This document shows, one piece after another, positions 20,201-64,000 of a stretch of 64,000 nt of DNA. How positions within the stretch are numbered: the stretch's first letter is position 1; each line of letters begins with the position of its first letter. The translations under genes were made by a program, and so were the position numbers. Origin of the DNA: Phallusia mammillata (lineage: Eukaryota); assembly GCA_965637545.1 (NCBI GenBank), contig OZ281496.1, positions 24,924,001 to 24,988,000 on the forward strand. Direction: 5' to 3'. The notes below the pieces were generated by a model. It did not search any database, was not told where the DNA came from, and worked only from the letters and a program-made list of their open reading frames with translations.

Positions 20201-23200
20201 AAGAATAAATCTTATTGCTTCATCTGTCTTGACTATCACAAGTGATCCACCTTCTGCTTGGCAAGCATCATTCGATGCCGTGAAGTTACGACGTATTGTA
20301 CCAAGGTAGAACTCTGTGTTGCCTACTCTCACCCACTCTGGTGTTGCAGAGACAGGTTGGTTACGTTTCGCCAAAAAGATAGACCACATAGGAATTCATG
20401 ACGTGAGAAACAAAATTTATGTTTGTTTTTTTCTTTTTTTCTGTCCTATTTGATTTGAGAATACCAGGCTGATGACTCTTACACAACATAGTTTGCTTCT
20501 ATGTTCAGCAAGTATTTTTTGCTGTTCAAATGCGTGTAGCGTCAGATACCGGGCCTGTATTTAGTGAGGATGTTTAGCGGAAGGTAGTGTAAGTTTAGGA
20601 ATGACTTTGTTATTTTAATTTGTGGTTGTCGGAGTTGCGTCGGTTTTATATGCTGTGATGGTACATGGCAGTATAGGCGTTTCGTTGCACATTTAAATAA
20701 TGTTTACGACACCTAATTCTTGTTCTACCTAAAACCTACCGTCTGGTGTTACAATGATGTTTTGTCCAAAACCAGTGGTAAACCGTTGGGTAGTATCTGA
20801 AAAAGGCGGTCTTAATCAAAGTAAAAAATTGATGAAGGTACAACGGTTTATCGGTCACTACATAGTTTATAATTTTACTATCAAACATCACAGTTTGGTA
20901 ACCTGTGGCTTGTGTTGTGGATTGTAATGCTGTTTCAGCTGCAATGGTGATTTTAGTCGTCTTTTCTGATGTACCTGCAGTGGTAGCTGCGTTTGCCTCT
21001 TCTGTTGTGGCTGCATTGAAATCTTTGGTTGTCTTCTCTTTTGTTGTTGCAGTGCTAACGTCAGTTATCTCTTCGGTTGTAGTTGAGCCTATTGCTTCAC
21101 TTGTAATATGTGTAGTCGCTGCAGACGTGGCTTCGGTTGTTTCTTCGGTTGTCGCTGCAGTGGTGGCTTCGGTTGACTCTTGTGTTTTGGTTGCAATGGT
21201 AGCTTCGGTTGTGACTGCAATGGTAGCTTCGGTTGACTCTTCGGTTGTAGCTTCATTAGTGACTTCGGTTGTCTCTTCGGTTGTGACTGCAATGGTAGCT
21301 TCGGTTGACTCTTCGGTTGTAGCTTCATTAGTGACTTCGGTTGTATCTTCGGTTGTGACTGCAGTGGTAGCTTTGGTTGTAAATTCTGCCATAGCTTCAG
21401 TCGTGACTTCGGTTGTGACTGCAATGGTAGCTTCGGTTGACTCTTCGGTTGTAGCTTCATTAGTGACTTCGGTTGTCTCTTCGGTTGTGACTGCAATGGT
21501 AGCTTCGGTTGACTCTTCGGTTGTAGCTTCATTAGTGACTTCGGTTGTATCTTCGGTTGTGACTGCAGTGGTAGCTTTGGTTGTAATATCTGCCTTAGCC
21601 TCAGTCGTGACTTCGGTTGTCTCTTTAGGTGTAGTTGAGCCGATGGTTGTCATTTGTGTTGTCGCTGCAGTGATGGCATCGGTTGTAATTTTTGTTGTGG
21701 CCGTAGTGATAGCTTGGAATGGAATCGTTTCCGTATGTTCAGTTGTAAATGCCGTTGAAGGCGTTGTTGCATATTCCCGTACAAGTTTATCTAAATGCAA
21801 TAGTTGAGTTTTTTTTAAGTTTACCACTTAAACAAGTTTTTTTTAACAATATTCATTTTATCGAAAGTTTAACGTTAAATTAGCAGGGAATAAATTATTT
21901 ACCAAATAGCGCAGTCCAATTGATCTCAAGAAAGTTCCCATTCTGCTGAAGTGTGTCTCTTTTTCTTTTTGCCACTATTTGCGATATTAGTACAATAAAA
22001 TGGTCGTTAAAGATATTTTGAACCGCGACAGTAACATCCAACGTACTGACGGACAGTCTTATTTTGCTCGGAGGGTCGCGAAACCAACGCTTAAAATGTA
22101 TTGTTACCACACTATTAGAAGCGTAGTGAGTTATTATTGTTGTTCCATTAATTCGACCTGCAAAAACATACAACGCAGTGTTATTTGGCGGGGTTTTAAA
22201 AAGTAAGGGCAGATGTGTTGTTTTTGTGCTTTTTTTCTGCTGATGACTTGCAAACTATTGTCAAACATATTTCTTTTAGCGTTTTTTTGTTGATTTAAAA
22301 GGTTAACAACGTAATTACCGTAATAAGCTTTCCAGTGGACTATTGGGCCTGCACTGTGCCAATGCCTGCCTGGAATATCGGTTCTGAAAACTGAAACGTT
22401 GAATCCGCAGTAATCGATCTCAACAAAATCATACGAGAAAATCAAATATTGAGGCATGTCAGTCGTGTCAAACTGTATTTCTATTTCCTTCGGTAGCACG
22501 TCGTAACACTCGTCAAATTCTTGTGTAGCATATTGGATCGCGGATAAAAGCTTTGGCTTTATATCAAACCTGCCAAACTGAGACTCTGCGAATGCAAAAA
22601 CCGCGTTTAATGTCGCTATAATGTTACAAAAAAATCATTTTAATACAAACAAAATATTTGACCAAATGAGGTTAGTAAAATGTTTTTGTGTCGATCTTTC
22701 ATTTAAAAATAAGCGTTGAAAGAATGCCCAACCGCTTGTACATTTAGTGTTGATGATGCAATGATTCTGTACAATACAAGGATTTTGGAGCACAGGGGAA
22801 CAAAGTTAACGAACCATAGTGTTTCGCACAGCTTCTTGCCTGGAAAATATTACCTTACATTTTCAGTCGCGCAGTGACGAGCCTAATGGTCAGGGGTGGG
22901 GAAGCCGTATGCGGCCCGCTTGCCTTTTTAATGTGGCCCGCGTCACAATTTTGGTACAGCATAAAACAAAGCATCGAAAAACAACAATAAAATGTTTATG
23001 TACAATTTACTTGAAAAGAATTCGACATTTCCACATTTGTCGCCAAACTTATTAAAATTGCCACACATTCAACCACTTGCTGTGTTTGTGACGTAACAGT
23101 CACTCGATTGTCTCTCCTTGCAGTAACAAATCATTTGCCATGTGGTGTTAGTTTTAAATTGATTTTAGAGGTATTAGCGTGGATCCTTATATTGTTACAT

Positions 23201-26200
23201 AAAATATATTCGGTATAACGGAGCTAGGGTGTTCCAGAAAGAATGGACAGATTTTAGTCGAATTAAGTGATAAACCTGTATGCCTTGTTTGTTGCAAACA
23301 AGTAACAGCAAAGAAAAAAAATTTGGAGCGATGAAATATAAAATCACTTGTGTGCTTAGGGTATTACATGGAATTTGAAAATAAAAAAATATTTGGCCGG
23401 CCCGAAAATGTTGTGCAATTCATGCGGCCCGCAGTACTAAGTAGGTTCCCCACCCCTGCTATAGGTAAACAACAAATGTATGTGCATTGTGTATCCTTAC
23501 GTTTCGGGACTAGTCGAGAATACTTGGTTGTGGCTACTTGAGTAGTTGCTGTTGTCACGGCGGAAGTGATTCTTGTAGTTGCTGTTTGTTCTTCTTGAAT
23601 ATAAAGGTCTGTATGTACCAGAATATTTTATTGTATACATGTAGTTTACGTGCTTTAACTTTTTAACAACGTGTCGGAAATAATTACTAAAAGGATGGGC
23701 TGCAACGAAGATATTGATGTATGTAATTAAAAATTAGTACCGCTTTATGATTTAATGCCTTTTAACAAATGGTCTAAAATGTAAACTAGTTGCTACATTG
23801 CACTTCACCTAGCTCTCATCTCGCGTTTGAATGCACAATTTACCCCACTTAGCTAATATAACTTATGCGCCTTAACTGTTTGGTATGTCACCACGTTTTT
23901 ACACAAGTACCCAATCTTACCGTATAAGGCAACCCAGTCGAAAGAGGCTACACGGATTGGAAGAATTTCTCTTTTTCTTTTTCCCACTGGGACTTGGACT
24001 GTAAATCGGTCATTGAAGATTTCGTAAACCTCAATGACGGACCCCAAAGTTAATGTTATGTAGACTTTGTTTGGTGGATTCGTGTACGTTTTTGGAAAAT
24101 ACACAGTTCCCACACTTCCATTAGGAATAGGCAAAGTAACACTTCCAGAAACTTTACCTTTAAAAAATATGTTTTGGTCTTAGCTTGTTTAGGAATGTTG
24201 AATTCAGTTGATAAGCACACATAGATATAGATAGGAAAAACATATTTTTTGGTTTGTTTGTTTATTGCTGTTCACGGTGGTAGACCCAAATGCGTAAAGC
24301 TCAAAACGACTTGACCATTGGTCTCCTTATCTTCTTGCAAGTCTGTTGGATCTATTTTACTTTAGCAACCCAAATACAATGTATTTACGTAATTGTTTTG
24401 TTTTGTACTATTCGCAGACATGAACTTGAATAGTAAAGTTTATAGAGCTCTTCTGGCAAGTGTTTTTATTTCGACGTCCTATACAGGTCGCCTTCATCCG
24501 GGTAAATAATACTGAATGCGCGTAGTACAGTGCACGATAAACAAAGGAAAAAAGAACGCAAACACGTCGAAAATAGGCGTCGAAACGTCGGAATAAAAAT
24601 ACTTGCCAGAAGTCCCGACAAACTTGATACCATGCCTGACAGCAATAGCTTATATAAAATAGCGATAAATTACCTCGAAATGCACTTACCGAAATAAGCT
24701 CTCCATACAATTGTCGGTCCAAATTCTTGCCATATACCGTCCCTAACATCTGTCCTGAAAACTGAAACATTCACACCGCAGTTGTCGACATCCAGCACAT
24801 TATAAGAGAACGTGTATGTGTCTGGCATGCCGCTTGTGTCAAGCTCAATTTCAATTTCCTTTGGCTTTACATCATAACTCTCGTCAAACTTTAGCGTAAC
24901 ATACTGGATGGCAGCTGGGGGATTTGGAAATACCTTGACTTCGCCTCTTTGGGGTTCTAAAAAACGTTACATTTACATGAAAGCGTGTTTTGTTGGGTAA
25001 AACATAAAAGTGGTCAGTGACACATCATACGAGTGTAGAATGTCTATGACTCACATCAATTGCGTTGTTTTGGGTCGGGACGTTTTGAAGTATATAACGC
25101 CTTAACCCAAAATCCTTTATAACCCAAATGGCCAAAATAATATTTTAAGCACTTTTATACACCAATAGTCAGTTGTTGTCTTTTTAAGTATTTCGTAGTT
25201 TTTAGTGAAATTTTGTACCTTTTGGGTAATTTTTCGGACTTGCAGTTGTGGTAGGAGCCCAAGTGGTCGTTTCTACATGTAATTATATAGAAAATCATAG
25301 CCATTATGTTTGTATTGCAAGTTTCGAAAAGCAAACACAGTCTATCTGTCCAGGCTAGGGTAATATTGAAAAAACTGTCCCCTACCGTTTGTTGGTGTGC
25401 TTGCGGTGAAATATGGGTATAAGTCGTCTTGAATAGGTGAACAACCTGCAAGAGATATTGTTATTTTTGTTTATGTTGTTCCAGCCAACTTATTTCCTGC
25501 TACATGCAACATTCAGTTGTGCTTGTTAGCATTATTACGGTTACTGGACAGTCGATGGATGCCAATTTTTGAGTTGTGAGAATTGCTGTAAATTACGATA
25601 GGTGTCTGCAAACTTACAAAAACTTTGACTTCAGTTCTTGGTTGGAAAATACTGTTTTTACACATTTGACGTAAAGGTGTGAAAATCATAAACGTATATA
25701 CAGTCAGTTACCAAAGTCTACTTTCCACTCCAAACTCAATGTTGTGTTTTGCCATCCTGCAAAACCGGTTGTCTGTGTATCGATTTTTTCAACGGCTGCT
25801 TCAAATCCGCATTCTTCATAGAAAATCACATGCGCTGCAAACTCCGATTCATAATTTTGCACATTTAAGGTTGTGCGAAGTGGGCGGTTTGCAAAACACT
25901 CTCCATAGAATATGTAGACACTTTTAACTCCACTTGTACTTCCGTCGAAGTCACTGACATTCATGATTCCCGAAATTGGTCCTACCACGTGAAATATATG
26001 TAGACAGTTGCGTGAGTCGAGGTGCTTAGTTTTTAGGTCGTAAATTCAATATTATGGTGCTAAACATAGTATTACAGCAATGGTGTGGCGATTTTTATAA
26101 AATATTTGTGGTTTGTTTAGTATTTCTCAGTATTTAACATATATGTACCTTTCCCATTCTTGTCACGAAACGTGCAGTTTTCTTGTGGGTCACCTGTAAC

Positions 26201-29200
26201 AAAGTCACGATTACTATCACGAACTGCTGTGTTCCCAACCCCGGGTCATATGCATGCCCAAAATTTGGCCCTATACCCGAAAGTAAAAGCTCAAAGCCCG
26301 GCCTTTTAAACACAACAAACTCCGAATAAGGTTTTAAAGTTGGTGTTATTGCGGCACAAAAGATACTGAATGTGAAGTCAGGCACAAATTAATCTCGTTG
26401 TTTTTAAACTTCCTAAACCCTACCCGAAAAAACGGGCTCTGCCCTAACCCAATCACATTTCTTACCTTGACACACCACCCACGCCAGGTAGAGTTTTTCG
26501 ACGTCATATGATTCATTACGTAACCAAACCACTGACGCTGTAAACCCACAGAGACTAATACTGAGTATTTCCACGTCAATGCAATCAACTTGGTCTCCAG
26601 ACGGGTTTTGCAGCTTGTACGAAATGTTATTGGGTCTTTGGTTAAAACACTTCTTGAAGGACACATGCTCTATGTTTGGTTTGGAATTATTGTATCGTAG
26701 TTTGGAAATACGATGGGTGTTGTTGATACATTCTGTGAGAAGAAGTATGAGTTGATGTATGTCAGCAAATGTGAATGTAGATTGCCTTGGTAATATTTCC
26801 ATGTTTTAGAAATTTAATCTTTAGACTTTAGATTTGATTAAACGTTTTTCAGAAGACGAAATTGATTTAAATAACCAAAGCGTATTTCAAACGAACGGAC
26901 ATAGTTATCCCAATTAAGGTGACCAAATCGTTAAACGTTCTAAAAAGATTTAACTATGCTCAAACAGTCATTTTGATGCATGTTTTTGTTAAAAAGACAA
27001 TTTTGTGCACTAGGTTTAGCAATATTCCTTGGTCATAATTTGTATGCTTTTCTTACCGCTCACGTTCACATTCGGGTAAAGGTTCCCGGGAAGTTCTTTG
27101 TCGTAGTCACAAGAACAATTTTGTGTGGCACCTAAAATACATGTTTTACAATTTTCTATTCATAAGCATAATTTTTAGGTACCGTTTTACCGTTTTTTTT
27201 ACACATTTTAAAAAATAGTAATTGCTTGCAGCATGTTAGTTAAACCACACTTTGTACTTAATGTGCTTTAAATAAGACGACTGTTTTTTCATTAGTTTCA
27301 TTTTTATCAATCTTCATCTCTCCTAATTGTAATGTAAAGTGTGTTTGTATATTTAAACGTTCTTAAAGGCCACATAAGGCTGTAAAGAGCAGGGGTGTCA
27401 AACTCGAACACTCAACAACAATTGCAGTATTTTGTCAGATTTTTATCTAATTACAATGAATTTGTCTTACTTTTCAAAGCTATTACTTAAAAAAGTGAAA
27501 GCTATTGTTTAAACAGACATTTACAGAAATTTAATTATAAATAATAATTCATATGTTATGAATAGAAACGATAGTAATCAAACCGTTCCTCAAACCAGAT
27601 AGCCACATGCGGCCGCAGAAACGAGTTTGTGGGCCTATTGTGTGCAAACAATGCGAAAAACAGTCACCAAAAGCGTCACAATTTAGATTATGAGGTAATA
27701 AACAGTTAAAACTGATCTTCATACTGTGCAGCTCAATCTCTGCATCAAGTTGGAAATCTGGGATTTGGGGGCGTCAGTAGATGGTATATACATGATATAA
27801 ACCTTATTCTTTACATCTGTAATTTTGAAACAAAAACCAGCAGGTAATTTGCGCCTGTTGGTGAAATAAGGATCTGCAATGTGGCCGTCATAGCGAAAAA
27901 GTTGTTTATGTGTATAAAACTTGATTAAAAATCACATGCGACCCTCGGCATAATTTTTAAACTGCAATGTGGCCCTCTAACCCAACGAGTTTGACACCCC
28001 TGGTATAGAGGGTGCTAGGACATACCGTGTTTTATCCGCCACTTTATAACTGTTCCTGTATCCTCCCATCCAGTATAATCCCCTGTGGCATTCTGGTCAG
28101 ACCTTTGCACGCTTGCAATAAAGCCACAACGCCCGTATGTAACAACGGAAGCATTAAAGCCAATATCGTTGTATTCATTGTCCAATGCCAGACACACGTT
28201 ACATGGCAGATTGTTGAAGCACTTTTCGAAATTGATGTAGATCAGTTTGGGAGTATTCGGGTGTCCTTCAAACTTGCCCACGTCAACTGAACCATTCGTT
28301 GCTGGCAAATCTAAATATTTTGCATTTTGTTGTGCTGAAGCAAAATTTGCTAACAGACAGGAAACTATATAATACTGCTCATGCCCTTAACGAAACTCCA
28401 AACCCAGAAACATATCATGCTTGGTTGGTGGCGTGGTACCCTTTTTTCATACAGTAAGTTTAACGATAAAAATAACGGCCCAAAAAGACCTAAACAGCGA
28501 CTTGCTTTATTGTTCACACCCATCGGCAAATGCTCATGCTATCATCAGTGACACCATTCTTTGATCAAATGGAACGAAATTCGCAGGCGGAAACAGGGAA
28601 TTGTAGCCTATGTGACTCAACAGCACTTAAAACCTAAATAGTTCCTTCCTGACAATCTGAAAAACACAGCGCACTAAAATGTCGCGACGTTTTTTCCTAC
28701 CGTTGTTCCATCGTATTTAGTCGCTTATGGTTTACTTTGTTGATTTACGCTACAAGGCCATGTCAACTGTTATAATTAAGTATTGTTACGACAATACTTA
28801 AAAATATATTTAAGTTGCCGCCTTTCGTTATTGTCAAGCCAAACGCTTTAGTAAATGGATGTCTTAAATCAACTCAATTTAAGTTTATTATGTATTTCCG
28901 CATTTGCTCTAGTATGGAGTAAATATCTCCATAAAATGGATGTCTTAAATCCACTCAATTTAAGTTTATTTTGTATTTCCGCATTGCTCTAGTATGGAGT
29001 AAATATCTCCATAAGACGAACAATTACCGCAATTTTTGTCACACAAACTTACCATGTTCAATGCGTTCGCAAATGAAGAATCTGTTAGCAGAACAATCAT
29101 CAACGAACCAGCCTTCGTTCTTTTCCGTTGCTACACAGCCATGTGATATACTGGGCTCGCCTCTACCAAATCTTATCTCCTCAGCTTTTAGTTCGCTTCC

Positions 29201-31666: not shown

Positions 31667-31699
31667 CAAAGCACCTTGGTCTTGTGAGCTTGAAGTGTC

Positions 31700-34147: not shown

Positions 34148-35454
34148 AACGCTTCATCCGTTGACCTATCCGCCCTTTCATTCCGCTTTAGCAGCCGTGG
34201 TGAAGGCTGTGCTGTTGCGCAAGTCACAGAATTTGCTTGAAAAAGGGTTTACAGCAAGTTTATTCAAGTGAGTGTATACATATCAGTTTTGACCTAAATT
34301 TAAACTTAAGTTTAGATTATTGAGCTCGAATCTTACTTAGGAAAACCAGGCAATTGAGTGGGCATATGAGTTGTAACTATTTTGTTATTTTTCAGGAATC
34401 GCTAAACCGTTTTAAGCTTTGAAGACCTGCCAGTTTGCGAAAGGTTCCTGGAATACAAGTTAATAAGGTAACTTTGTTTTGATAAGTTTATATTTTATTT
34501 TTTTATTTTACTTTCGGTATTTTGTCACAGGGCCTGATATGGACTCGGTTTAATTCTTCAATGGAAACCTGAACAATCACAAGTAAGTAAATGTTACACG
34601 TTTTAATTTAGTAACTTACTTTTGTTAATTAACCCGATAATGTTGTTTTGCACAATTATAATAGAATTTTAAATTGAGTTGTGAAATTAATTTAGCTTGT
34701 AAGATAGAAATGTTTCCCTAATCCCTATGTTGTTTATGCTTTAATAGTTCACTAACGCTTTTTTAAGATATTTTTTATCAGGTTGCTGTAAATTATTGCT
34801 TGACAAATACTATGCTTCTGCAGGTCGTTTATTGTTCTGAATGGAGGTATAACTGTCCTGAAATTAGTTGTCAAGTTTAGACGTATTGGAAAAAATGCGA
34901 AATGTAAGTGAACAAATTATATTTACTGAAGATAGGTTCGATAAAATTTGTTAAGAAGACCATAACATCGTTTAAGTGTTGAATGTGCTTGTAGTGCCTA
35001 AATTGTATTCAGTTTGTTGTAATATCAGCATAACACAAACTTGGAGCAATAATGTCTTCGGAAAAGTAAACGTTTCAAATTTTTACCATAGCATTTATTT
35101 AATTTTGCAGAAACAATTCATGAATTCCAAATTCGGATGCACGTCAGTTTGAAGTAGGTTACTTGATTTTCAGTCATGCCTTTATCACAATTTATGTTTA
35201 TTAGTATAAGTTACTGATTGTAAGTTACTGTGTAATAGGTTGTACAAACGTCATAAAAATCCTTCCACTACCTTGTTAAACAATTATTTTGTTTTAACAG
35301 ACATATAACTCTAGTTGTATATTTACTTTTATAGCGACTTTTTTACCTACAGAGCCATCGGATACAAGGGACATTACATCTTGCAGTACCACATATTACC
35401 CAAGTTTTATAAAAGATAAGTTCATGTTATAGATATTTTTAATGTAGTCATGAT

Positions 35455-36000
35455 AAAGTGTTGTAAGTTAAAACAAGGACCACAGTAACAAAGGACCACA
35501 GCGCAACACCGCGGCGCGTAAACAGGACCACAGCTGGTGCATTACCAGCATCACTTCGCAGACAACTGGATCCACGGAAACAGAGGACCACAGCGCAGCA
35601 CCGGCGCGAGCACAAGTGCCACGGCGCATTTGATAACTTTGTGTATTATTTTGCTGAATATTATTCCTTTAGCCGCAAATAATTAATTTTACTTGTTTTA
35701 TTGTACAGGAACATCGTGTACGACAACCTGGTGCAGAAGAAACATGCGGTAAGGCATCGTCCCAAGAATTTACAAAGATAAGTTATTGTTGTACATATTT
35801 AACTTGCTTTAGTCGTTATAAAGTGTGTAAGTTAAAACAAGGACCACTGTAACAGAGGACCACAGCGCATCACCGCGGCGCGTAAACAGGACCACAGCTG
35901 GTACATTACCAGCACCACTTCGCAGACAACTGGAACCACCGCAACAAAGGACCACAGCGCAGCACCGGCGCGAGCACAAGAGTCACAGCGCGTGTTATAA
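35455..36000 (+). repeat. Two GC-rich about 180-bp direct repeats containing multiple ggaccacag motifs
   Basis: gtaagttaaaacaaggaccac...caccggcgcgagcacaag at about 35463-35630 and 35827-35990. Confidence 0.85.
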
Positions 36001-36250
36001 TTTTGAAAATTGTTATGTTGAATACTAAACTTTTCGCCGTATAGAACTGATATTATATACTTTATTTTTCAGAAACATCTTCTACGACGACCTCGAGCGG
36101 AAGAAAACGGAGGTTTCTGAGATGAAGACGTTCTTATTGTCGTTGCGAATTTATTCGATATTTTGTTGTGCTTTACGATTATCGCTTTTACAAAAAAAAA
36201 CAAAAACACAACACTTTCGGGAACACGAAGAACGACAACTGATCAACGAC

Positions 36251-36350
36251 CACTTTGGACCACTCACACAAGGATCACTTTGGACCACCCACACAAGGAT
36301 CACTTTGGACCACCCACACAAGGATCACTTTGGACCACCCTCACAAGGAA
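36251..36350 (+). repeat. 25-bp minisatellite, 4 copies (cactttggaccacccacacaaggat)
   Basis: Units start at 36251, 36276, 36301 and 36326. Confidence 0.9.
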
Positions 36351-39570: not shown

Positions 39571-39631
39571 AAATGTCGTTTATTAGTTTTTGCTTGTACA
39601 CAGACTTATGCAAAAAAAGGACTTTTAATTT

Positions 39632-42740: not shown

Positions 42741-42741
42741 T

Positions 42742-46800: not shown

Positions 46801-46836
46801 GGTGAGAACAAAAGGGGCATCCATTATCCTGTGTTC
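43822..46836 (-). CDS. Gene C 7TM region
   Basis: TM1 SYFGFIICIIALAITFLCFLL; TM3 CYASGIFMQYFFLVAWFWL; ECL2 MCWI; TM6 LLLFGFAIAWVFGF; TM7 AWMFGLLNGIMGVVMFLVYC. Confidence 0.9.
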
Positions 46837-52800: not shown

Positions 52801-55800
52801 CATTAAGTCATCCATCCTTATGAATTGATATAAATATATTTCGTCTATGCGGCATCTGCAGTGTCTTATTCCACTAAAATGCATTGATAAAAGTCGAAAA
52901 ATGTTTTTTTTACCAGTCGGGCTTGTTGCTGTCAGTGCCACTGGTGCAGGCTCTATAAAACATAAAAAACAAATACCTTTTATGGCCAAAACAAAACAAC
53001 TTAAATTCAAAAGTAAAAAAACGCATCTGGTTTGGTAAGTGGTCGGCTAAACCAAGTATTAAATTTGCTGAACTTTTCCATCAATAAAACATACTATTTT
53101 CTTAACGCAGTGGTTCCCAACTGGGAAGGAATTCCTCTCAAGAGAGAAAAAGAAGAAGAATTTACTTTCATATGTAAATGTGGTTTGTAAATTGACACTC
53201 TAGTTTTGGAAGTAAAACCTGTAAAGTTAATAAAATACCCAATTTTAAATAAACTTTGTATGGTTAAGCATCTCCTATGTAGTCTATTGGGGAGAAATCA
53301 ATAAATGTTTCGAATTGTTAAGTGAGGAATTCGTCTATCAAGGTTCGGAACCACTGTCTTAACCGTTTTGAGATGCACGATAGCCATGTTTTTAATCGCA
53401 AGTAATATGCGATTAACCGGAACAGTCCTAGCAAACTGTTTAAAGCCTCAAATCGAGTGACGGTTTGTCATACCTTGAAGTTCAAACTGGACAATAAAAG
53501 AAGCGTTCCACCCAGAAACTTTGTCAATTCTGTTAACAATGCTATCGAACGAAGTTGGTAATATTTTGTCAACATTAACTTGGAAAATGTGACCAGGCGG
53601 CTGTTTCCACGATAGTTTAACTGTTGCCTTGTTGCTGTGCGGTATGAGGGGCACTGCGACCTTTTGACTGGACTTCTTGTTGTCTTTTACCACAAACCAT
53701 CCGACTTGTTTCACTGTAATACGAAGTTTTTAGTCAGCACCATGGAAATTTCGAATCAAATATCCGTCTACTGGTCTGTAGTTGCAGTCTGCAGAGTTGC
53801 AATAGTCATGATGCTTATTAAAGCGAAATGCATTTGTTTTTGTAAAACAATAAAAATACAGCGACTGATTCGGTGTTTTCATTTCAAAATTTCCGGCCTT
53901 CATGAATTAATGACCCTGAATCGTCGCAGTCCTTTGCTTTTACTTGGGAGATTTCATTAATAAGAAAAGATTTACTACAAATCAAACAGTAATTTTAAGA
54001 ATATAATGGACCATATCGCAAAAACGTCATGTTTTTTAATACATGCTTCGGCACAAAATAGAACGTCTGTCATAATTTTGTTCATAAAGATAGTTTTTAT
54101 TTCAGGTCAAAAGAGTTTGTTTGAACTGCATATTTTGAACTATGTCCGGTTCCAATGGAAACATCATATCCTTTGGAAATAACGCTTACCTGTCGGCCCT
54201 TGTGGTGTTGTAGGGGTGGCAGAAATGCTGTTCAACTTGGAATCTAAAGCACAAGGTACATGAGTTTCACTTAACACCATTAAGTGGTATGACAGTATTA
54301 AAGTAGCATTAAAATGGCATAACAGTAATTATTTAATAGTTTCTCTTAAACCTGTTAACTTTCGTCAAACAGATTCATGTCTGGGATCAGCTCTGTGCGT
54401 TCATGTAGACAAGCGACCAAGGCACATTTATACTAGCCCTATTTCCGTCGTTATATCTAAGCAAGTCAGCTTGCCAGGCATTTTCACACGGTAGGAAAAA
54501 AAGGTAGAAAAATCTCGGTGGGATTCGAACCCCAGATAGGAGTCTAACGCCTTAGAATCCGTGCTCTTTAACCGGGTATGCTGTATACACAAGTGTATAT
54601 CGCATCAAACCTGGGATGCACGAAGGGAATGACCTGCTTGTTGTGAATATTATTGCGTCAGTAATGCGAAAGATGAAGTAATAGGCAAGCTGGAGTGTTG
54701 TACTTTGTAGCTTAGTTTACATCTCAAGTCGCCTACCGTTTATGGCACGCCATTGGAGGATTGGCGAGTCGCTCCATCCAGCAACCTGGTCCGTCCGTAC
54801 CACAGTAACATTAAAGCCAGTATCGGTGATAGCAGTAATCAACATGTCAAAGGTCTTTAGTGGGGCACCAACTAACTGTAACTTGATGCTTGCACTTGAG
54901 TTAAGGCAGTGTGGAAATTTGATTGATAGTGATTTGACGTTGCTTGCGCTAGGCCCAACATTGAACAGACCTCTTTGAAGGACTGCAAACATAAAAGTTT
55001 ACATTGTTTTGTAACACTTACTTTACCAGTCCATGCATTTAACAGGGCTTATATTACTATCAGTATTGTATTCCCTTGACAAATATTGTACCTATAGGTT
55101 TCAGCTTTAGACTTTGAAACGGGAATGGATTATTTTTAGAGCGTGTGATTAAAGACGATTTCTACACAAGCTCAGGCGTAACTTTAAATTTATGTTAAGC
55201 CTCGAGCTATAACTAACACATTTTCATTGACAGTAATAAAAGGTCAGTTTTGCGCAATTGTTTCAATTGGCTGCAACTAGTCCTACGTTAAATTTTATAA
55301 CTAGTAAAGTAAAGACTAGTAAAGATGTTATAGAGTCCATTAAAAAAAAAAGATATCTAGTAAAGATGTTATAGAGTCAATTCTTTCTATTTATGTTAGC
55401 CATACCAAACACATTTTTATTTACCAGTAAGTGAATGCAGGGTTACAGGAAAGGTTTGTTTCCAAAATTGCTACTCACTGCTGAACTACGTTTTTAATAT
55501 GGAGTTGTCCCGACAGAAATTCTAGTAAATTGGCTAGTTTTTGCAACAAAGAAACAAAGCAATAATACCCACCATCAGGGACTTTGGCCGAAGGAACAAC
55601 TGTTGTGGTCTTGTTGTTTAATGCAGCAGGGCCTGCGTATGTGTTAGCGTTAGTAACAAAAGTAACAAAATTAAGCAAAAATTGCGTAGCACAGAAAGAA
55701 CTGTTCAACACATAACAAAATTGTGGGTATTTTACAGATTGTAGAATTGTTTTTTAGCAATTTTACTACTCGTATATTTAGGGTTATCATCAGTCTGAAG

Positions 55801-58800
55801 GGATTTTGGTTTAGATTCAGAGAAAAAAACGAATACCAATTAATCACCATGATAAGCTGTTCAGGCATTGTAAAAAGAAGACTGACTTAGCAACAAAACG
55901 TACCAGGAAAGACTTCTACATGTAACGGGAAGGATTTCTTCCAGCCGGAGTTGGAGTCGGTTCTTGTAACCCTCACCGAGAGTGACGAATCACAGATTTT
56001 GGTTACTTCAGGAACAAAGGTATGATATGGAAGACAGGCTACAGAAATTCTTATTTCCACATTCTTGTTAAATGTTTTGCTTAACGGCAAATTCATTGTC
56101 AAAGACGGGTTTGGACTACTTGGGACTTCCATCCATTCCTGTTGCAAAACTGTAAAGCGAAATGTTTAAAGTAAATATTTGGTTTGCTGTTAGTTTAAAA
56201 CGTCCTTTTACCAATTCTTCCACTGGTAGCATTTATTGGCGTCTCAACTCTTTTGGTTTCTGAAAAAAAAATCAGCCATAATAAGCAGTGATTGTTGTGT
56301 TAAACCAGTGGTTCCCAACCTGTGGTACGCGAAGGTTTTTCAGGTGGTACGCGAGTAGTTTCCGTTTTTTTTTTCACAAAAAGTAGATGCGGCCGGAAAT
56401 GACTTTCGACGCGCTGTTAGCAAATTTACACCGCGCATCGACCAATTGGTGGACGGTAAACAAAAACAAAAATCTCAGTAAATTTAGTTACGGTGCTTTA
56501 GTGTTATTTTAGTAGGCCAATATTATTCTTCTGAATAAAACGTGATGCGACCAAATTAGTTGTTCTGCAAGAAGTGGTACGTGTGGCAGTACAAAACATC
56601 TAAATGGTACGAGATCGTAAAAAGGTTGGGAACCCCTGTGTTAAACGAACTAGCCAATGACGCCATTTAGAAAGGGGGAATAGTTTAGACTGAATTTCCA
56701 CTACCAAAAAAATAGACATATATAAATATCACAGACATTAAATGGGGCTTATATTAGTATACTGTAATATTTCGAAACAGCTGTTTATGCAAACGCACAT
56801 TGATTCCCATAGACAAGAATTCCATAGACAAAAACGGTTGAATTTTCCTATCACTCAGTTGTAAAGTGCCTTTACAAAGCCGTGTTACAGCAGAGGTCAA
56901 ATAATATGTCAATACTGCGCTCTCCAGCCAACTTTGGACCAAACTGTAGCCAAGATTTTTCAAACAGGGCATTTTTAAACGAGTTGGTAACGCCTACAAC
57001 AATTAGCATTGCCAAAATGTTTTGTCAATCAATTAGGTAATGGCTTATTCATTGACAAAACCTGCAATTAAAAGACAAATGCCATTGTTACTATAATTAC
57101 CAGGCAAGACTTTGAATTGCAATGGGAATGATTGGTTCCATCCTGATGGCAAATCAGTTCGTTTCACTTCCACAGTGAAATTGGAGTCACAAATTTGGGT
57201 GACTTTCAAAGTAAAGGTATGTTTGGGTAAACCAGGTGCAGTCACCATCACTTCAACACTCTTGTTCAAAGTTTTCTTGAGAGGAAAGGTAAATGATGCA
57301 GTTGGAGTAGAACTGCTCGGAATGGTCATTGAACCAGTCTGCAAAGCTGAAAAACAACAGAGAAGTAAAGAGTCGATCATATTTTTCACACAAATCTAGT
57401 GGCAAAGGGACTTACTTTGGGGCACACTTGGTGTAGTGGTAGTGATATTTTTGTTGGCAAGAGATTTGGGTTCTGAAACAAAACACAAATTTGAAATTTG
57501 ATTTTTAATGTTTCCAATATTAACTGTGCATGAGAGCGGTACTCTATCTGGGAACACGACACACAGCAAAATATTTCAATTTTAAGAACTCAATCTCATT
57601 ACCTGGATGGATTTCATAGTGCAATGGAAATGAATTGTTCCACCCTGATGGCAAATCAGTTCGTTTCACTTCCACAGTGAAATTGGAGTCACAAATTTTA
57701 GTGACTTTCAAAGTAAAGGTATGCTTGGGTAGACCAGGCGCAGTAACCATCACTTCAACACTCTTGTTCAAAGTTTTATTGAAAGGAAAGGTAAATGAGG
57801 CAGTTGGAGTAGAACTGCTCGGAATGGCCATTGAACCAGTCTGCAGAGCTGAAAAACAATAAAAAAATAAAGAGTCAGTCAGATTTTTCACACAAATGTA
57901 ATGGATTAAAGGCCTTACTTTGGGGCACACTTGGTGTGGTGGTGGTGATATTTTTGTTGGCAAGCGCTTTGGGTTCTGAAACAAAACACAAACTTGAAAT
58001 CTAATTTCCAATGTTTGCAATATTAATCATAATCAAAAGCATTACACTATTTGCCATGCAATGCAAACAACAATCTTCGAAATTTAACATCACAAACTCA
58101 TTACCTGGAAAAACTTCATAGTGCAATGGAAATGATTGGTTCCACCCTGATGGCAAATCAGTCCGTTTCACTTGTACAGTAAAATTGGAGTCACAAATTT
58201 TGGTGACTTTCAAAGTAAAGGTATGCTTGGGTAATCCAGGTGCAGTCACCATCACTTCAACACTCTTGTTCAAAATTGTCTTGAGCGGAAAGGTAAATGA
58301 TGCAGTTGGAGCAGAACTGCTCGGAATGGTCATTGAACCACTCTGCAAAGCTGAAAAACAACAAAGAAATGAAGAGTCAGCTATTTTTTGCACCAATCTA
58401 CTGGATAAAGGCCTTACTTTGGGATACACTTGGTGTAGTGGTAGCAACATTTTTGTTGGCAAGGGCTTTGGGTTCTGAAACAAAACACAAACTTGATAAT
58501 TGATTTTGAATGTTTACAATATAAATTGTGCATAAACAACGTAACACTATTTGGCAAGCAACACAAGAAACAATCATCGAATTTCAACATCACAAACTCA
58601 TTACCTGGAAAAACTTCATAGTGCAATGGAAATGATTGGTTCCACCCTGATGGCAAATCAGTTCGTATCACTTGCACAGTGAAATTGGAGTCACAAACTT
58701 TTATGACTTTCAAATTAAAGGTATGCTTGGGTAGACCAGGTGCTGTCACCATCACTTTAACGCTCTTGTCCAAAGTTGTATTGAAAGGAAAGGTAAATGA

Positions 58801-61800
58801 GGCAGTTGGAGTAGAACTGCTTGGAATGGTCATTGAACCAGTCTGCAAAGCTGAAAAACAAAAAATAAATAAAGAGTCAGTCAGATTTTTCGCACCAATC
58901 TACTGGACAAAGGGTCTTACTTTGGGGCACACTTGGTGTGGTGGTGGTAGTGATATTTTTGTTGACAAGCGCTTTGGGTTCTGAAACAAAACATAAACTT
59001 GAAATGTAATTTCCATTGTTCGCAATATTAATCATAATCAAAAGCATTACACTATTTGGCATGCAATGCAAACAACAATCTTCGAAATTCAACATCACAA
59101 ACTCATTACCTGGAAAAACTTCATAGTGCAATGGAAATGATTGGTTCCACCCTGATGGCAAATCAGTTCGTTTCACTTGCACAGTGAAATTGGAGTCACA
59201 AACTTCTATGACTTTCAAATTAAAGGTATGCTTTGGTAGACCAGGTGCAGTCACCATCACTTCAACGCTCTTGTCCAAAGTTGTATTGAAAGGAAAGGTA
59301 AATGAGGCAGTTGGAGTAGAACTGCTCGGAATGGTCATTGAACCAGTCTGCAAAGCTGAAAAACACAAAGAAATGAAGAGTCAGTCAGATTTTTCGCACC
59401 AATCTACTGGACAAAGGGCCTTACTTTGGGGCACACTTGGTGTGGTGGTGGTAGTGATATTTTTGTTGACAAGGGCTTTGGGTTCTGAAACAAAAGACAA
59501 ACTTCATGTTTGATGTTTCATGTTTGCAATAATAACTGTGCATAAAGAGCGTTACTCTTTTAGGAACACAACACAAGGAAAAATATTTAAATTTTAAGAA
59601 CACGATCTCATTACCTGGATAGATTTCATAGTGCAATGGAAATGATTGGTTCCACCCTGATGGCAAATCAGTTCGTTTCACTTGCACAGTGAAATTGGAG
59701 TCACAAACTTCTATGACTTTCAAATTAAAGGTATGCTTTGGTAGACCAGGTGCAGTCACCATCACTTCAACGCTCTTGTCCAAAGTTGTATTGAAAGGAA
59801 AGGTAAATGAGGCAGTTGGAGTAGAACTGCTCGGAATGGTCATTGAACCAGTCTGCAAAGCTGAAAAACACAAAGAAATGAAGAGTCAGTCAGATTTTTC
59901 GCACCAATCTACTGGACAAAGGGCCTTACTTTGGGGCACACTTGGTGTGGTGGTGGTAGTGATATTTTTGTTGACAAGGGCTTTGGGTTCTGAAACAAAA
60001 GACAAACTTCATGTTTGATGTTTCATGTTTGCAATAATAACTGTGCATAAAGAGCGTTACTCTTTTAGGAACACAACACAAGGAAAAATATTTAAATTTT
60101 AAGAACACGATCTCATTACCTGGATAGATTTCATAGTGCAATGGAAATGATTGGTTCCACCCTGATGGCGAATCAGTTCGTTTCACTTGCACAGTGAAAT
60201 TGGAGTCACAAACTTTTATGACTTTCAAATTAAAGGTATGCTTTGGTAGACCAGGTGCTGTCACCATCACTTTAACGCTCTTGTCCAAAGTTGTATTGAA
60301 AGGAAAGGTAAATGAGGCAGTTGGAGTAGAACTGCTTGGAATGGTCATTGAACCAGTCTGCAAAGCTGAAAAACAAAAAATAAATAAAGAGTCAGTCAGA
60401 TTTTTCGCACCAATCTACTGGACAAAGGGTCTTACTTTGGGGCACACTTGGTGTGGTGGTAGTGATATTTTTGGTGGCAAGCGCTTTGGGTTCTGAAACA
60501 AAACAGAAACTTGAAATGTAATTTCCATTGTTCGCAATATTAATCATAATCAAAAGCATTACACTATTTGGCATGCAATGCAAACAACAATCTTTGAAAT
60601 TCAACATCACAAACTCATTACCTGGAAAAACTTCATAGTGCAATGGAAATGATTGGTTCCACCCTGATGGCAAATCAGTTCGTTTCACTTGCACAGTGAA
60701 ATTGGAGTCACAAACTTCTATGACTTTCAAATTAAAGGTATGCTTTGGTAGACCAGGTGCAGTCACCATCACTTCAACGCTCTTGTCCAAAGTTGTATTG
60801 AAAGGAAAGGTAAATGAGGCAGTTGGAGTAGAACTGCTCGGAATGGTCATTGAACCAGTCTGCAAAGCTGAAAAACACAAAGAAATGAAGAGTCAGTCAG
60901 ATTTTTCGCACCAATCTACTGGACAAAGGGCCTTACTTTGGGGCACACTTGGTGTGGTGGTGGTAGTGATATTTTTGTTGACAAGGGCTTTGGGTTCTGA
61001 AACAAAAGACAAACTTCATGTTTGATGTTTCATGTTTGCAATAATAACTGTGCATAAAGAGCGTTACTCTTTTAGGAACACAACACAAGGAAAAATATTT
61101 AAATTTTAAGAACACGATCTCATTACCTGGATAGATTTCATAGTGCAATGGAAATGATTGGTTCCACCCTGATGGCGAATCAGTTCGTTTCACTTGCACA
61201 GTGAAATTGGAGTCACAAACTTTTATGACTTTCAAATTAAAGGTATGCTTGGGTAGACCAGGTGCTGTCACCATCACTTTAACGCTCTTGTCCAAAGTTG
61301 TATTAAAAGGAAAGGTAAATGAGGCAGTTGAAGTAGAACTGCTCGGAATGGTCATTGAACCAGTCTGCAAAGCTGAAAAACAACAAAGAAATGAAGAGTC
61401 AGTCAGATTTTTCGCACCAATCTACTGGACAAAGGGCCTTACTGTGGGGCACACTTGGTGTGGTGGTGGTGGTAGTGATATTTTTGTTGGCAACGGCTTT
61501 GGGTTCTGAAACAAAACACAAACTTCATGTTTGATGTTTCATGTTTGCAATAATAACTGTGCATAAAGAGTGTTACTCTTTTAGGAACACAACACAAGAA
61601 AAAATATTTAAATTTTAAGAACACAATCTCATTACCTGGAAAAACTTCATAGTGTAATGGAAATGATTGGTTCCACCCTGATGGCAAATCAGTTCGTTTC
61701 ACTTGCACAGTAAAATTGGAGTCACAAATTTTAGAAACTTTTAAAGTAAAGGTATGCCTGGGTAATCCAGGTGCTGTCACCATCACTTCAACACTCTTGT

Positions 61801-64000
61801 TCAAAATTGTCTTGAGCGGAAAGGTAAATGAGGCAGTTGGAGTAGAACTGCTCGGAATGGTCATTGAACCACTCTGCAAAGCTGAAAAACAACAAAGAAA
61901 TGAAGAGTCAGTCAGATTTTTTACACAAATCAACTCGACAGGGGGCCTCACTTTGGGGCACACTTGGTGTGGTGGTGGTGGTGATATTTTTGTTAGCAAG
62001 CGCTTTGGGTTCTGAAACAAAACACAAACTTGAAATCTAATTTCCAATGTTTGCAATATTAATCATAATCAAAAGCATTACACTATTTGCCATGCAATGC
62101 AAACAACAATCTTCGAAATTTAACATCACAAACTCATTACCTGGAAAAACTTCATAGTGCAATGGAAATGATTGGTTCCACCCTGATGGCAAATCAGTTC
62201 GTATCACTTGCACAGTGAAATTGGAGTCACAAACTTTGGTGACTTTCAAAGTAAAGGTATGTTTGGGTAAACCAGGTGCAGTCACCATCACTTCAACACT
62301 CTTGTTCAAAGTTTTCTTGAGAGGAAAGGTAAATGATGCAGTTGGAGTAGAACTGCTCGGAATGGTCATTGAACCAGTCTGCAAAGCTGAAAAACAACAG
62401 AGAAGTAAAGAGTCGATCATATTTTTCACACAAATCTAGTGGCAAAGGGACTTACTTTGGGGCACACTTGGTGTAGTGGTAGTGATATTTTTGTTGGCAA
62501 GAGATTTGGGTTCTGAAACAAAACACAAATTTGAAATTTGATTTTTAATGTTTCCAATATTAACTGTGCATGAGAGCGGTACTCTATCTGGGAACACGAC
62601 ACACAGCAAAATATTTCAATTTTAAGAACTCAATCTCATTACCTGGATGGATTTCATAGTGCAATGGAAATGAATTGTTCCACCCTGATGGCAAATCAGT
62701 TCGTTTCACTTCCACAGTGAAATTGGAGTCACAAATTTTAGTGACTTTCAAAGTAAAGGTATGCTTGGGTAGACCAGGCGCAGTAACCATCACTTCAACA
62801 CTCTTGTTCAAAGTTTTATTGAAAGGAAAGGTAAATGAGGCAGTTGGAGTAGAACTGCTCGGAATGGTCATTGAACCATTCTGCAAAGCTGAAAAACACA
62901 AAGAAATGAAGAGTCAGTCAGATTTTTCGCATCAATCTACTGGACAAAGGGCCTTACTTTGGGGCACACTTGGTGTGGTGGTGGTAGTGATATTTTTGTT
63001 GACAAGGGCTTTGGGTTCTGAAACAAAAGACAAACTTCATGTTTGATGTTTCATGTTTGCAATAATAACTGTGCATAAAGAGCGTTACTCTTTTAGGAAC
63101 ACAACACAAGGAAAAATATTTAAATTTTAAGAACACGATCTCATTACCTGGATAGACTTCATAGTGCAATGGAAATGATTGGTTCCACCCTGATGGCAAA
63201 TCAGTTCGTTTCACTTGCACAGTGAAATTGGAGTCACAAACTTTGGTGACTTTCAAATTAAAGGTATGCTTGGGTAGACCAGGTGCTGTCACCATCACTT
63301 TAACGCTCTTGTCCAAAGTTGTATTGAAAGGAAAGGTAAATGAGGCAGTTGGAGTAGAACTGCTCGGAATGGTCATTGAACCAGTCTGCAAAGCTGAAAA
63401 ACAAAAAACAGATAAAGAGTCAGTCAGATTTTTCGCACCAATCTACTGGACAAAGGGTCTTACTTTGGGGCACACTTGGTGTGGTGGTAGTGATATTTTT
63501 GGTGGCAAGCGCTTTGGGTTCTGAAACAAAACATAAACTTGAAATGTAATTTCCATTGTTCGCAATATTAATCATAATCAAAAGCATTACACTATTTGGC
63601 ATGCAATGCAAACAACAATCTTTGAAATTCAACATCACAAACTCATTACCTGGAAAAACTTCATAGTGCAATGGAAATGATTGGTTCCACCCTGATGGCA
63701 AATCAGTTCGTTTCACTTGCACAGTGAAATTGGAGTCACAAACTTCTATGACTTTCAAATTAAAGGTATGCTTTGGTAGACCAGGTGCAGTCACCATCAC
63801 TTCAACGCTCTTGTCCAAAGTTGTATTGAAAGGAAAGGTAAATGAGGCAGTTGGAGTAGAACTGCTCGGAATGGTCATTGAACCAGTCTGCAAAGCTGAA
63901 AAACACAAAGAAATGAAGAGTCAGTCAGATTTTTCGCACCAATCTACTGGACAAAGGGCCTTACTTTGGGGCACACTTGGTGTGGTGGTGGTAGTGATAT
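43822..64000 (-). CDS. Gene C: adhesion GPCR with at least 18 H-type-lectin-like modules, mucin, HRM/GAIN and 7TM; its 5' end lies beyond the window
   Basis: Last exon GVVMFLVYCFFPAVIRAML...ERPGAKA* (stop at 43822). 7TM, GPS, GAIN and HRM-like (IYCPKTAILVGGTTYNFAQTEVGISATSAETC) exons follow in order. Upstream modules are phase-1 exons that splice in frame. Confidence 0.8.
46377..46545. mobile_element. Tc1/pogo (Tigger-like) MITE
   Basis: TIRs cagtaaacctcggttaa / ttaaccgaggtttttactg, followed by TA. Confidence 0.7.
47458..47595 (-). CDS. Gene C GPS exon
   Basis: 138-nt exon: EYVTRTQCKSYKTALGQWTAQDCSYVLNSFPQMCICKQVTDYSLVV. Confidence 0.88.
51985..52110. mobile_element. Second copy of the same Tc1/pogo-like MITE family
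   Basis: ta|cagtaaaccacggttaa ... ttaaccgaggtttact; internal similarity to 46377-46545. Confidence 0.65.
52386..52634 (-). CDS. Gene C diverged H-type-lectin-like module
   Basis: 249-nt exon: ...LTIPFNTAIKFRNQTVTATL...FKINVTNITDCCFTVRIERTDKKAGHNSTLTIDWKLV. Confidence 0.72.
53108..53356. mobile_element. hAT-type MITE
   Basis: TIRs cagtggttcc / ggaaccactg; flanks tcttaacg / tcttaacc (7 of 8 match). Confidence 0.8.
53474..53713 (-). CDS. Gene C diverged H-type-lectin-like module
   Basis: 240-nt exon: ...FQVNVDKILPTSFDSIVNRIDKVSGWNASFIVQFELQG. Confidence 0.68.
54512..54592 (-). pseudogene. tRNA-derived SINE head or tRNA pseudogene in an intron
   Basis: Minus strand ends ...ctgggttcgaatcccaccg (perfect B-box/T-arm). 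No convincing full cloverleaf. Confidence 0.5.
54737..54982 (-). CDS. Gene C diverged H-type-lectin-like module
   Basis: 246-nt exon: ...SIKFPHCLNSSASIKLQL...FDMLITAITDTGFNVTVVRTDQVAGWSDSPILQWRAING. Confidence 0.75.
55904..56149 (-). CDS. Gene C array-proximal diverged copy of the array module
   Basis: 246-nt exon: ...LSKTFNKNVEIRISV...TKICDSSLSVRVTRTDSNSGWKKSFPLHVEVFP. Confidence 0.78.
56306..56638. mobile_element. hAT (Charlie-like) MITE
   Basis: TIRs cagtggttcccaacct / aggttgggaacccctg; perfect 8-bp TSD tgttaaac. Confidence 0.9.
57101..64000 (-). repeat. Coding tandem array: 14 complete ~504-bp units (246-nt domain exon, about 57-63 nt linker exon, two introns), continuing off the right edge
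   Basis: First domain exon 57101-57346, last 63650-63895. Each encodes LQTGSMTIPSSSTPTASFTFPF...VCDSNFTVQVKRTDLPSGWNQSFPLHYEVFP; linker (E)PKxLxNKNITTTTPSVPQ. All exons checked are phase 1. Confidence 0.93.

Follow-up and report, generated by a model that had tools for sequence, protein, structure and literature searches.

A Phallusia mammillata adhesion GPCR with a massively repeated ectodomain of predicted H-type-lectin-fold modules

ADGRV1 (VLGR1) is a giant adhesion G protein-coupled receptor (GPCR) with about 35 Calx-beta repeats of beta-sandwich fold, and the latrophilins (ADGRL) possess one lectin-type domain (SUEL/RBL). In the ascidian Ciona, 21 of 30 adhesion GPCRs have the GPS as the only recognisable element of their N-terminus, and 24 are unclassified, probably ascidian-specific and without vertebrate orthologues (Kamesh et al., 2008, PMC2396169). 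H-type lectins are poorly characterised and form a small family that is not expanded in molluscs and brachiopods (PMC8878817). In the literature searched, the sole co-occurrence of such lectins with GPCR-like proteins is the CRMP complex of Toxoplasma, in which both are present as separate chains, and no paper connects H-type lectin domains to adhesion GPCRs of animals. Here, a stretch of 64,000 nucleotides from the ascidian Phallusia mammillata was analyzed (assembly GCA_965637545.1, contig OZ281496.1, positions 24,924,001 to 24,988,000 of the forward strand; hereafter the window, C3:24924001-24988000 in the 240 Mb of genome searched), which contains GPCR genes in tandem, all on the minus strand. 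In a preliminary description, made from the sequence alone, two of these genes, B and C, were reported to carry arrays of an H-type-lectin-like module, and this domain was said to be possibly undescribed among adhesion GPCR ectodomains, a statement that the literature searched bears out. With a probability of about 0.6, we read the locus as tandem class B2 GPCR genes, two of which have an ectodomain of divergent H-type-lectin-fold modules and encode multivalent, probably carbohydrate-binding receptors. The GAIN-GPS-7TM core and the H-type-lectin fold are both known; what is new is an adhesion GPCR whose ectodomain consists of massively repeated H-lectin-fold modules that had not been annotated before. 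The analysis confirms the observation and supports this architecture.

Gene C is transcribed and spliced as one frame comprising module-linker repeats, a Cys-containing domain, GAIN, GPS and the seven transmembrane helices (7TM). The evidence comes from four runs of one study, probably RNA, in the form of assembled contigs. In each of the four runs one contig connects the final module exon (52386-52635) with the exon encoding the first transmembrane helix, TM1 (46727-46836), across twelve introns that are all GT..AG on the minus strand. The contigs extend ~1 kb both ways, into the 7tm_2 exon and into about four more modules, and splicing of the reported exons yields a single open frame of 505 aa with no stop. 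As the module exons are spliced to GAIN, GPS and 7TM in these contigs, the doubt raised in the preliminary description, that the module exons might not be spliced to the 7TM exons, is removed for gene C. The best database match, P0001 (CAB3229160.1, UniProt A0A6F9D8Z6, 'CD97 antigen-like', Phallusia mammillata, 1086 aa), is a partial gene C product with four modules and their linkers, GAIN and seven hydrophobic helices. The suggestion that the architecture is uncatalogued therefore has to be narrowed: a shortened gene C product is already deposited in UniProt/nr, with the modules unannotated. Since gene C lacks EGF repeats, 'CD97-like' is a mere best-BLAST label. A second public entry, P0002 (CAB3262703.1, cDNA-derived), covers a piece of the array with two modules and documents module-linker-module splicing. 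A word-based, length-limited search with the module region of P0001 returned P0001 alone, and this blank says little.

The 7TM of gene C is supported by sequence comparison as being of the adhesion-GPCR (class B2) type. Pfam 7tm_2 was found on exon 46000-46389 with 24.3 bits (cut-off 20.6) and Pfam GPS on 47359-47595 with 17.4 bits, which is under the cut-off of 22.5. In a phmmer search of the PDB, P0001:690-1086 aligned with ADGRG2 from the GPS to TM7 (E 2e-11), with further matches to ADGRE1, G6, D1, G4, F1 and G1, and the Atlas feature neighbours of the receptor part are all adhesion GPCRs with GPS or GAIN. A GPS-like Cys/Trp pattern stands 15 residues ahead of TM1 and aligns to the GPS of ADGRG2, so that GAIN and GPS are predicted to lie directly before TM1. 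When P0001:740-1086, a longer spliced piece, was scanned with Pfam, 7tm_2 was not detected, though the single exon does match, which we suspect to be due to composition bias; here the PDB search was decisive. The consensus for GPS autoproteolysis, H-L/x-S/T, is replaced by Q-V-T in gene C (CICKQVTDY) and by S-V-G in gene B (CIFYSVGDY); the catalytic His is absent from both, in line with the dead GPS of the preliminary description. Self-cleavage of gene C is unlikely because Gln-Val stands for the canonical His-Leu before Thr, and a Stachel-like TDYSLVV is retained despite this change. Several accepted adhesion GPCRs are not cleaved, and an absent consensus does not bar membership of the family. 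The furin sites noted earlier were also found, as dibasic furin-type motifs that read RVKR in gene C and RKRR in gene B, at equivalent GAIN positions. The occurrence of such sites at matching positions in two receptors with a His-less GPS suggests that in genes B and C convertase cutting may take the place of GPS autoproteolysis.

The modules themselves were counted with hidden Markov models (HMMs). Starting from the most evident copies, an HMM iterated on stop-to-stop fragments found 22, and a reciprocal HMM built solely from 169 domains of 139 proteins outside the Phallusia genome retrieved all 25 copies previously counted in the window, of which 18 belong to gene C (52384-63893) and the other seven to gene B (21901-28302). 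With this external HMM, 23 modules have E<1e-6, the two weakest (23856.. and 21898..) have E of about 3-5e-3, and the next, an unrelated fragment, has E 0.7. Position 21903, at which the preliminary description let the arrays begin, coincides exactly with the 3' end of the final module exon of gene B. Each module is one intact exon of 240-279 nt (80-93 aa) with phase 1 at both ends, as was claimed; splice sites were seen for all copies, and an AG acceptor 2 nt ahead of the first full codon together with a G|GT donor makes these exons symmetric. The motifs quoted for the module are present, and F44, R62, D64, W69 and W77 are each at least 90% conserved in an alignment of 56 sequences. Tandem Repeats Finder handles periods of up to 500 bp and therefore missed the gene C array, in which the unit measures ~505 bp. 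The G+C content of the window is 36-40% and there are no N runs.

In prediction, each gene C module is shown to be a six-stranded beta-sandwich of ~82 aa with H-type-lectin fold. The AlphaFold2 model of gene C module 54737..54982 (15-module alignment A1; m1dafd06030be) has six main strands at a pLDDT of 90.6, and that of gene B module 7 (m754eb2b26f35; pLDDT 89.1) gives the same H-lectin-fold matches; the modelled modules are six-stranded antiparallel beta-sandwiches superposable on Helix pomatia agglutinin (HPA) or discoidin. The AlphaFold and Foldseek test of single modules proposed earlier thus turned out positive: Foldseek against the PDB ranked the R1 pyocin fibre and HPA first, with E-values of 2e-3 to 3e-2. 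An ESM Atlas shape search gave a TM of 0.82-0.84 to clusters with H_lectin or Gp53-like_C, and the language-model neighbours of the module in the same Atlas (score 0.95) are H_lectin clusters. The test against Pfam H_lectin (PF09458) failed: no window module exceeds 24 bits, ten module exons scanned singly gave no match at E<=1 and weak Gp53-like_C matches alone, and a six-frame PF09458 search that covered the entire genome had no match within the window. The link to the Pfam family runs through other proteins. With A1 as the profile, HMMER matched 262 of 1.84 billion representative proteins (cut-off E<=1e-3), and in many of these Pfam H_lectin exceeds its gathering score on the matched residues. 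This applies to P0003, 4, 5, 7, 9, 12-15, 19 and 20 (E 1e-22 to 1e-8), with A1 and Pfam ranges of, for example, 256-340 and 273-340 in P0004, 152-222 and 159-223 in P0009, 545-624 and 561-624 in P0013, and 225-304 and 240-303 in P0020. Since Pfam calls H_lectin in these proteins at the residues aligned to the module profile, the modules are divergent H_lectin homologues, and the view that the module is a remote homologue of Pfam H_lectin proteins, itself below the Pfam threshold, is supported. The original label of an H-type-lectin-like module is therefore upheld by fold models and remote homology, but not by Pfam, the H_lectin threshold of which is never reached in the window. That the resemblance is convergent or generic, the module being an unrelated small beta-sandwich, is very improbable in our estimate: the Foldseek E-values of 2e-3 to 3e-2 and the identity of only 10-20% to solved structures would fit it, but four independent searches put H-lectin-fold proteins first, HMMER ties the modules to Pfam-H_lectin proteins at the same residues (E 1e-8 to 1e-22 among 1.84 billion sequences), and the reciprocal HMM from outside proteins retrieves exactly the window modules. 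An identity as rhamnose-binding, C-type or discoidin (F5/8) lectin was rejected, since those folds are absent among the structural matches. As a separate observation, the V.V.RTD..GW stretch has a weak local match (E 0.06-0.1) to residues 124-150 (ASVVNVEATSFDVLVDKTDMGSGWASE) of PDB 6tb9/6tba, the major capsid protein (RcGTA/HK97-type) of the Rhodobacter gene transfer agent, which may be due to chance or to a shared insertion domain.

The number of at least 18 modules in gene C was indeed a lower bound. With the sequence 50 kb past the window end added, the series comprises 83 intact, co-oriented phase-1 module exons from 52384 to 100941 in window coordinates, arranged as 26 units of ~505 bp, about nine super-units of 2349 bp with five module types each, two LCCL domains and two more modules, the modules alternating with Thr/Pro linker exons of ~20 aa. 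The LCCL domains (Pfam 50 and 26.5 bits) lie among the distal modules, 29.5-32.1 kb past the window end, and the combination of LCCL, H-lectin fold and adhesion GPCR is not described in the literature searched. A candidate signal-peptide exon, MRNLAPIVVALAFLAQSITA, with a phase-1 CAG|GTAAAA donor was found 39.4 kb past the window end. All 83 modules are inferred to stand behind this predicted signal peptide in one gene, encoding a protein of ~9,000 aa. Among 25 proximal 505-bp units the nucleotide diversity is 0.064 for the module exon and 0.088 for the linker exon, compared to 0.218 for intron 1 and 0.164 for intron 2; within the module it is 0.055, 0.046 and 0.093 for codon positions 1, 2 and 3. 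The module exons are thus two to three times more conserved than their own introns, and the lower diversity in exons than in introns, with the third codon position being most variable, indicates purifying selection on the module exons. The 83 modules encode 56 distinct peptides.

It could be that the short form is the real receptor, with about four modules, and that the distal array (beyond about 56 kb, 79 modules) is a separate secreted or mucin-like gene or consists of rarely used cassette exons. P0001, with its four modules, begins with a Met inside module 55902-56147, the RNA contigs reach only ~1 kb upstream of 52635, and module arrays without nearby 7TM exist elsewhere in the genome, on C5. 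We nevertheless consider this unlikely. The Met of P0001 lies in a module with the usual phase-1 acceptor, which is typical of a truncated repeat assembly, and short-read assemblies collapse such repeats; the 83 exons are intact, co-oriented, phase-compatible and constrained; a terminal exon, a stop or a promoter-like break was not seen between the arrays; and P0002 shows that array modules are expressed.

The R-x-D...G-W signature in the loop between strands beta5 and beta6 defines what, from the alignment, is a subfamily of H-lectin-fold modules with bacterial, metagenomic, amphioxus and Clavelina members (56 sequences). Presumably, this loop falls at W83-H84...Y89 of HPA, a part of the GalNAc site, which we treat as a lead and not as a result. 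In the gene C series, 71 of 83 modules carry the signature. A reading in which the modules are structural spacers, forming a long stiff or elastic stalk with O-glycosylated linkers that sets reach and compliance, with recognition left to the terminal LCCL (gene C) or C-type lectin domains (gene B), is somewhat doubtful in our view. Such distinct terminal domains are present, the copies are near-identical, as if length or valency and not diverse specificities had been selected, and a comparable build is seen in ADGRV1 with its Calx-beta repeats and in other receptors with strings of Ig/FN3 domains. A prediction of three copies gave a score of 0.00 ('no answer'), which lends a trimer no support and in itself weighs neither for nor against one. 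The spacer function is opposed by the conservation of the R-x-D...G-W loop at 90% or more across bacteria, phage-like proteins, amphioxus and ascidians, which exceeds the needs of a spacer, by the purifying selection on the whole module, and by established knowledge that the same-fold relatives HPA, discoidin, SLL-2 and R-pyocin feet bind sugars.

Further points weigh against the multivalent, probably carbohydrate-binding receptor that we prefer, and several of them suit the spacer. The canonical H_lectin signature is undetected by Pfam, the best score being 17.8 bits (E 0.0036, P0001:1-400) against a gathering score of 24. Profile searches of PDB sequences with alignments A1 and A2 found no solved H-type lectin, and the sugar-binding residues of HPA and discoidin are therefore not mappable on the modules. 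In known H-type lectins the sugar site lies between the protomers of a trimer, and tandem modules with mucin linkers may not form it. The same fold serves for assembly only in some phage tailspikes, being the C-terminal assembly domain in those of Sf6, LKA1 and phi297. R-x-D...G-W is absent in 12 of the 83 modules, among them the 'LQEGKM' type that recurs in the super-units. N-glycosylation sequons average 3.2 per module over the 83 modules, and in many a sequon follows straight after the conserved GW (GWNQS), where it could mask the loop. As to the extent of gene C, the short-read contigs cover the last four or five modules and a two-module fragment only, the copy number comes from one assembly, and both the 5' end and a transcript with all 83 exons are predictions.

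If the preferred reading of a lectin-fold receptor holds, the receptor would be a long, heavily O- and N-glycosylated bottle-brush, in which the conserved R-x-D...G-W surface loop would be the likely ligand site. The ligand would probably be a carbohydrate, by analogy with the H-type lectins of snail, slime mould and coral and with the pyocin and phage fibre feet of the same fold. Adhesion of high avidity would arise from the sum of many weak contacts, and any pull or movement would be transmitted to the GAIN-7TM unit. Gene C may then signal uncleaved or after a cut at the furin-type RVKR inside GAIN, and the same working is predicted for gene B with its order of C-type lectin domain (CTLD), seven modules, mucin, CTLDs, GAIN and 7TM. 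A wider proposal, which as a whole we regard as quite unlikely and put forward tentatively, is that of an ascidian-specific family of glycan-sensing adhesion GPCRs that would gain valency through rapidly amplifying exon arrays, with 1-83 copies per gene that possibly vary between individuals, and would recognise patterns or self/non-self with high avidity, for instance microbes, the tunic or cues for settlement. In this proposal gene C would be the largest known adhesion GPCR (~9,000 aa) and would signal without GPS autoproteolysis, perhaps after the furin cut in GAIN.

The coordinates of the features of genes B and C in the window are collected in Table 1.

Table 1. Features of genes C and B, in window coordinates
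Feature	Position	Strand	Evidence or remark
Gene C, proximal array	57101..63895	-	14 near-identical units of ~505 bp, each in the order 249-nt module exon (82-83 aa), intron, 57-60-nt Thr/Pro linker exon, intron
Gene C, codon ranges of array modules	57099-57344, 57601-57846, 58103-58348, 58603-58848, 59108-59353, 59613-59858, 60118-60363, 60620-60865, 61125-61370, 61634-61879, 62139-62384, 62641-62886, 63146-63391, 63648-63893	-	
Gene C, linker exon (example)	59930-59989	-	EPKALVNKNITTTTTPSVPQ; phase 1
Gene C, module exon 15 of window series	55904..56149	-	diverged; first exon represented in public protein P0001
Gene C, module exon	54737..54982	-	copy used for folding
Gene C, module exon	53474..53713	-	diverged
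Gene C, last module exon	52386..52634	-	RTD kept, GH for GW; spliced downstream in RNA contigs
Gene C, two short Thr/Pro-rich stalk exons	51669-51719, 51120-51179	-	RNA joints, GT..AG introns, open frame
Gene C, small Cys-containing domain, two exons	50948-51055, 50322-50431	-	RNA joints; weak Pfam GPR128_N match
Gene C, GAIN-region exons	49950-50099, 49630-49703, 49355-49469, 49066-49146, 48581-48730, 47903-48022	-	RNA joints, one open frame
Gene C, furin-type RVKR site	in exon 48581-48730	-	sequence
Gene C, GPS exon	47458-47595	-	C..W..C..CICKQV/TDYSLVV; RNA joints
Gene C, TM1 exon	46727-46836	-	exact, RNA joint
Gene C, TM2-3	within 46000-46389	-	open-frame bounds, splice sites inexact
Gene C, TM4	within 45455-45673	-	open-frame bounds, splice sites inexact
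Gene C, TM5	within 44948-45193	-	open-frame bounds, splice sites inexact
Gene C, TM6	within 44464-44664	-	open-frame bounds, splice sites inexact
Gene C, TM7 and tail to stop	within 43825-44040	-	open-frame bounds, splice sites inexact
Gene B, N-terminal C-type lectin domain	two exons within 29525-29710, 29042-29296	-	Pfam Lectin_C 24.8 and 38 bits
Gene B, module 1, type A	28026..28304	-	RSD...GW
Gene B, module 2, type B	26466..26732	-	without RxD..GW; external HMM E 6.5e-8; splice sites
Gene B, module 3, type A	25712..25981	-	HMM, splice sites
Gene B, module 4, type A	24690..24956	-	HMM, splice sites
Gene B, module 5, type B	23921..24157	-	KRKR in beta5-beta6 loop; external HMM E 2.7e-3; phase-1 splice sites
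Gene B, module 6, type A	22319..22585	-	HMM, splice sites
Gene B, module 7, type B	21903..22157	-	external HMM; folded
Gene B, Thr/Glu-rich mucin-like exon	20739..21827	-	tandem 72/204-nt repeats; phase-1 acceptor fits module 7 donor
Gene B, predicted remainder	9350..20395	-	CTLD 19748-20395, mucin-like exons, second CTLD 14542-15242
Gene B, GAIN-like exons with RKRR site	11877-12131	-	open frames
Gene B, degenerate GPS	11340-11498	-	CIFYSVGDYAIIVV
Gene B, 7TM exons	about 11299-9350	-	Pfam 7tm_2 36 bits on exon 10724-10990

For gene B, the junction of modules and 7TM is a prediction from co-orientation and compatible exon phases only; the phases are compatible among the seven module exons and the mucin exon that follows, and the public protein collection holds no gene B protein with modules. 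The CTLDs given in the preliminary description were confirmed by Pfam for gene B, in which three C-type lectin domains were found, while gene C has LCCL domains and not CTLDs, and the mucin stalks can be read directly in the sequence as Thr-rich mucin-like exons. A third adhesion-GPCR-like gene without H-lectin modules lies at 2165-7306 on the minus strand. Two exons at 6599-7306 are C-type-lectin-like, a mucin exon of the Thr/Pro type stands at 5943-6368, and GAIN-like exons, a GPS of CACAVLASF without His (3916-4122) and 7TM exons to about 2165 come next; the gene has no furin-type site at the GAIN position used in genes B and C. The gap between genes B and C contains a tandem 161/333-bp unit at 37631-39590 (11.6 copies, 87% match), which starts CCGGGGTTCGAAC; this start looks like a tRNA-derived (SINE-like) box B. 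Near this array a unit of 364 bp is duplicated and a microsatellite-like repeat of 25 bp is present (35412-36106, 36244-36370). In two gene C introns (46841-47040, 51841-52240) contigs of the RNA runs reach depths of hundreds to thousands and have many loose ends, probably as copies of a dispersed repeat that is expressed elsewhere. Just upstream of the candidate first exon of gene C, an 877-aa frame with reverse transcriptase and integrase of an LTR element occupies ext coordinates 105883-108513 (C3:25028001-25038000), and a glycosyltransferase-like gene is next (110.9-113.8 kb, ext coordinates).

With alignment A2, at least 150 module exons were found across the genome, some of them just upstream of the window. 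Modules followed by GPS and 7TM on the same strand are also present in one gene at C2:21.69 Mb and in two tandem genes at C5:17.42 Mb. At C5:18.27-18.31 Mb, dense arrays on both strands carry a Cys-containing variant, YDRCY...WGF...RTD..GW, in sets of eight modules followed by an EGF-like exon; as no GAIN or 7TM was found within 40 kb, the module is also used in non-GPCR genes, and the products of these arrays are probably secreted or single-pass multi-module proteins. Among the best 150 public matches, multiple membrane helices occur in P0001 only. The R-x-D...G-W module was also found in Branchiostoma floridae C3XSG4 (P0010), beside LDLa and a C-type lectin domain, and in Clavelina lepadiformis (P0007, P0015, P0017), in each case in proteins without multiple membrane helices, and this occurrence in amphioxus and Clavelina shows that the module is older than its expansion in Phallusia.

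Adhesion GPCRs are mostly orphans and are defined by the ligands of their ectodomains, and a receptor with lectin-fold modules in a string is a tractable example in which valency, force and signalling can be linked. The repertoire of these receptors gains a new ectodomain module, by which some of the 'GPS-only' N-termini of ascidian receptors (PMC2396169) may now be named. For the H-type-lectin fold, a large expansion by exon shuffling becomes apparent in a chordate relative, with 150 or more exons that belong partly to GPCR genes and partly to others, together with a widespread R-x-D...G-W subfamily that is invisible to Pfam and for which a solved structure was not found by sequence.

The described H-type lectins (PF09458), such as HPA, the C-terminal domain of discoidin I/II and coral SLL-2, are small soluble trimers or hexamers, whereas up to 83 modules stand in tandem in one membrane receptor chain here; the Phallusia modules stay under the Pfam threshold, have their own R-x-D...G-W in the beta5-beta6 loop and are known from sequence and models. 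The feet of phage and pyocin fibres and the ends of tailspikes (Gp53-like_C, PF21882; R1/R2 pyocin, LKA1 gp49, AP22 gp53) are C-terminal domains of homotrimeric fibres, in contrast to the Phallusia module, which is an internal repeat shuffled as a eukaryotic exon. With the adhesion GPCRs of class B2 (nearest ADGRG2, ADGRE1, ADGRG6, ADGRD1 and ADGRF1) gene C has the GAIN-GPS-7TM core in common, as well as a Stachel-like T-x-Y-x-L-V-V and a long modular ectodomain; it differs from them in the H-lectin fold of this ectodomain, not found in the literature searched, in the QV/T of the GPS and in the furin-type site in GAIN. Like the unclassified adhesion GPCRs of Ciona it belongs to an ascidian-specific expansion, but for Ciona no module was named in the N-terminus, and in Phallusia one is identified. 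Latrophilins have just one lectin domain, and its fold is a different one. ADGRV1 is likewise a giant receptor built from repeats; the repeat of gene C has a different fold and a larger number (83, with ~9,000 aa predicted), and compared to both ADGRV1 and the latrophilins its array is evolutionarily young and ascidian-specific.

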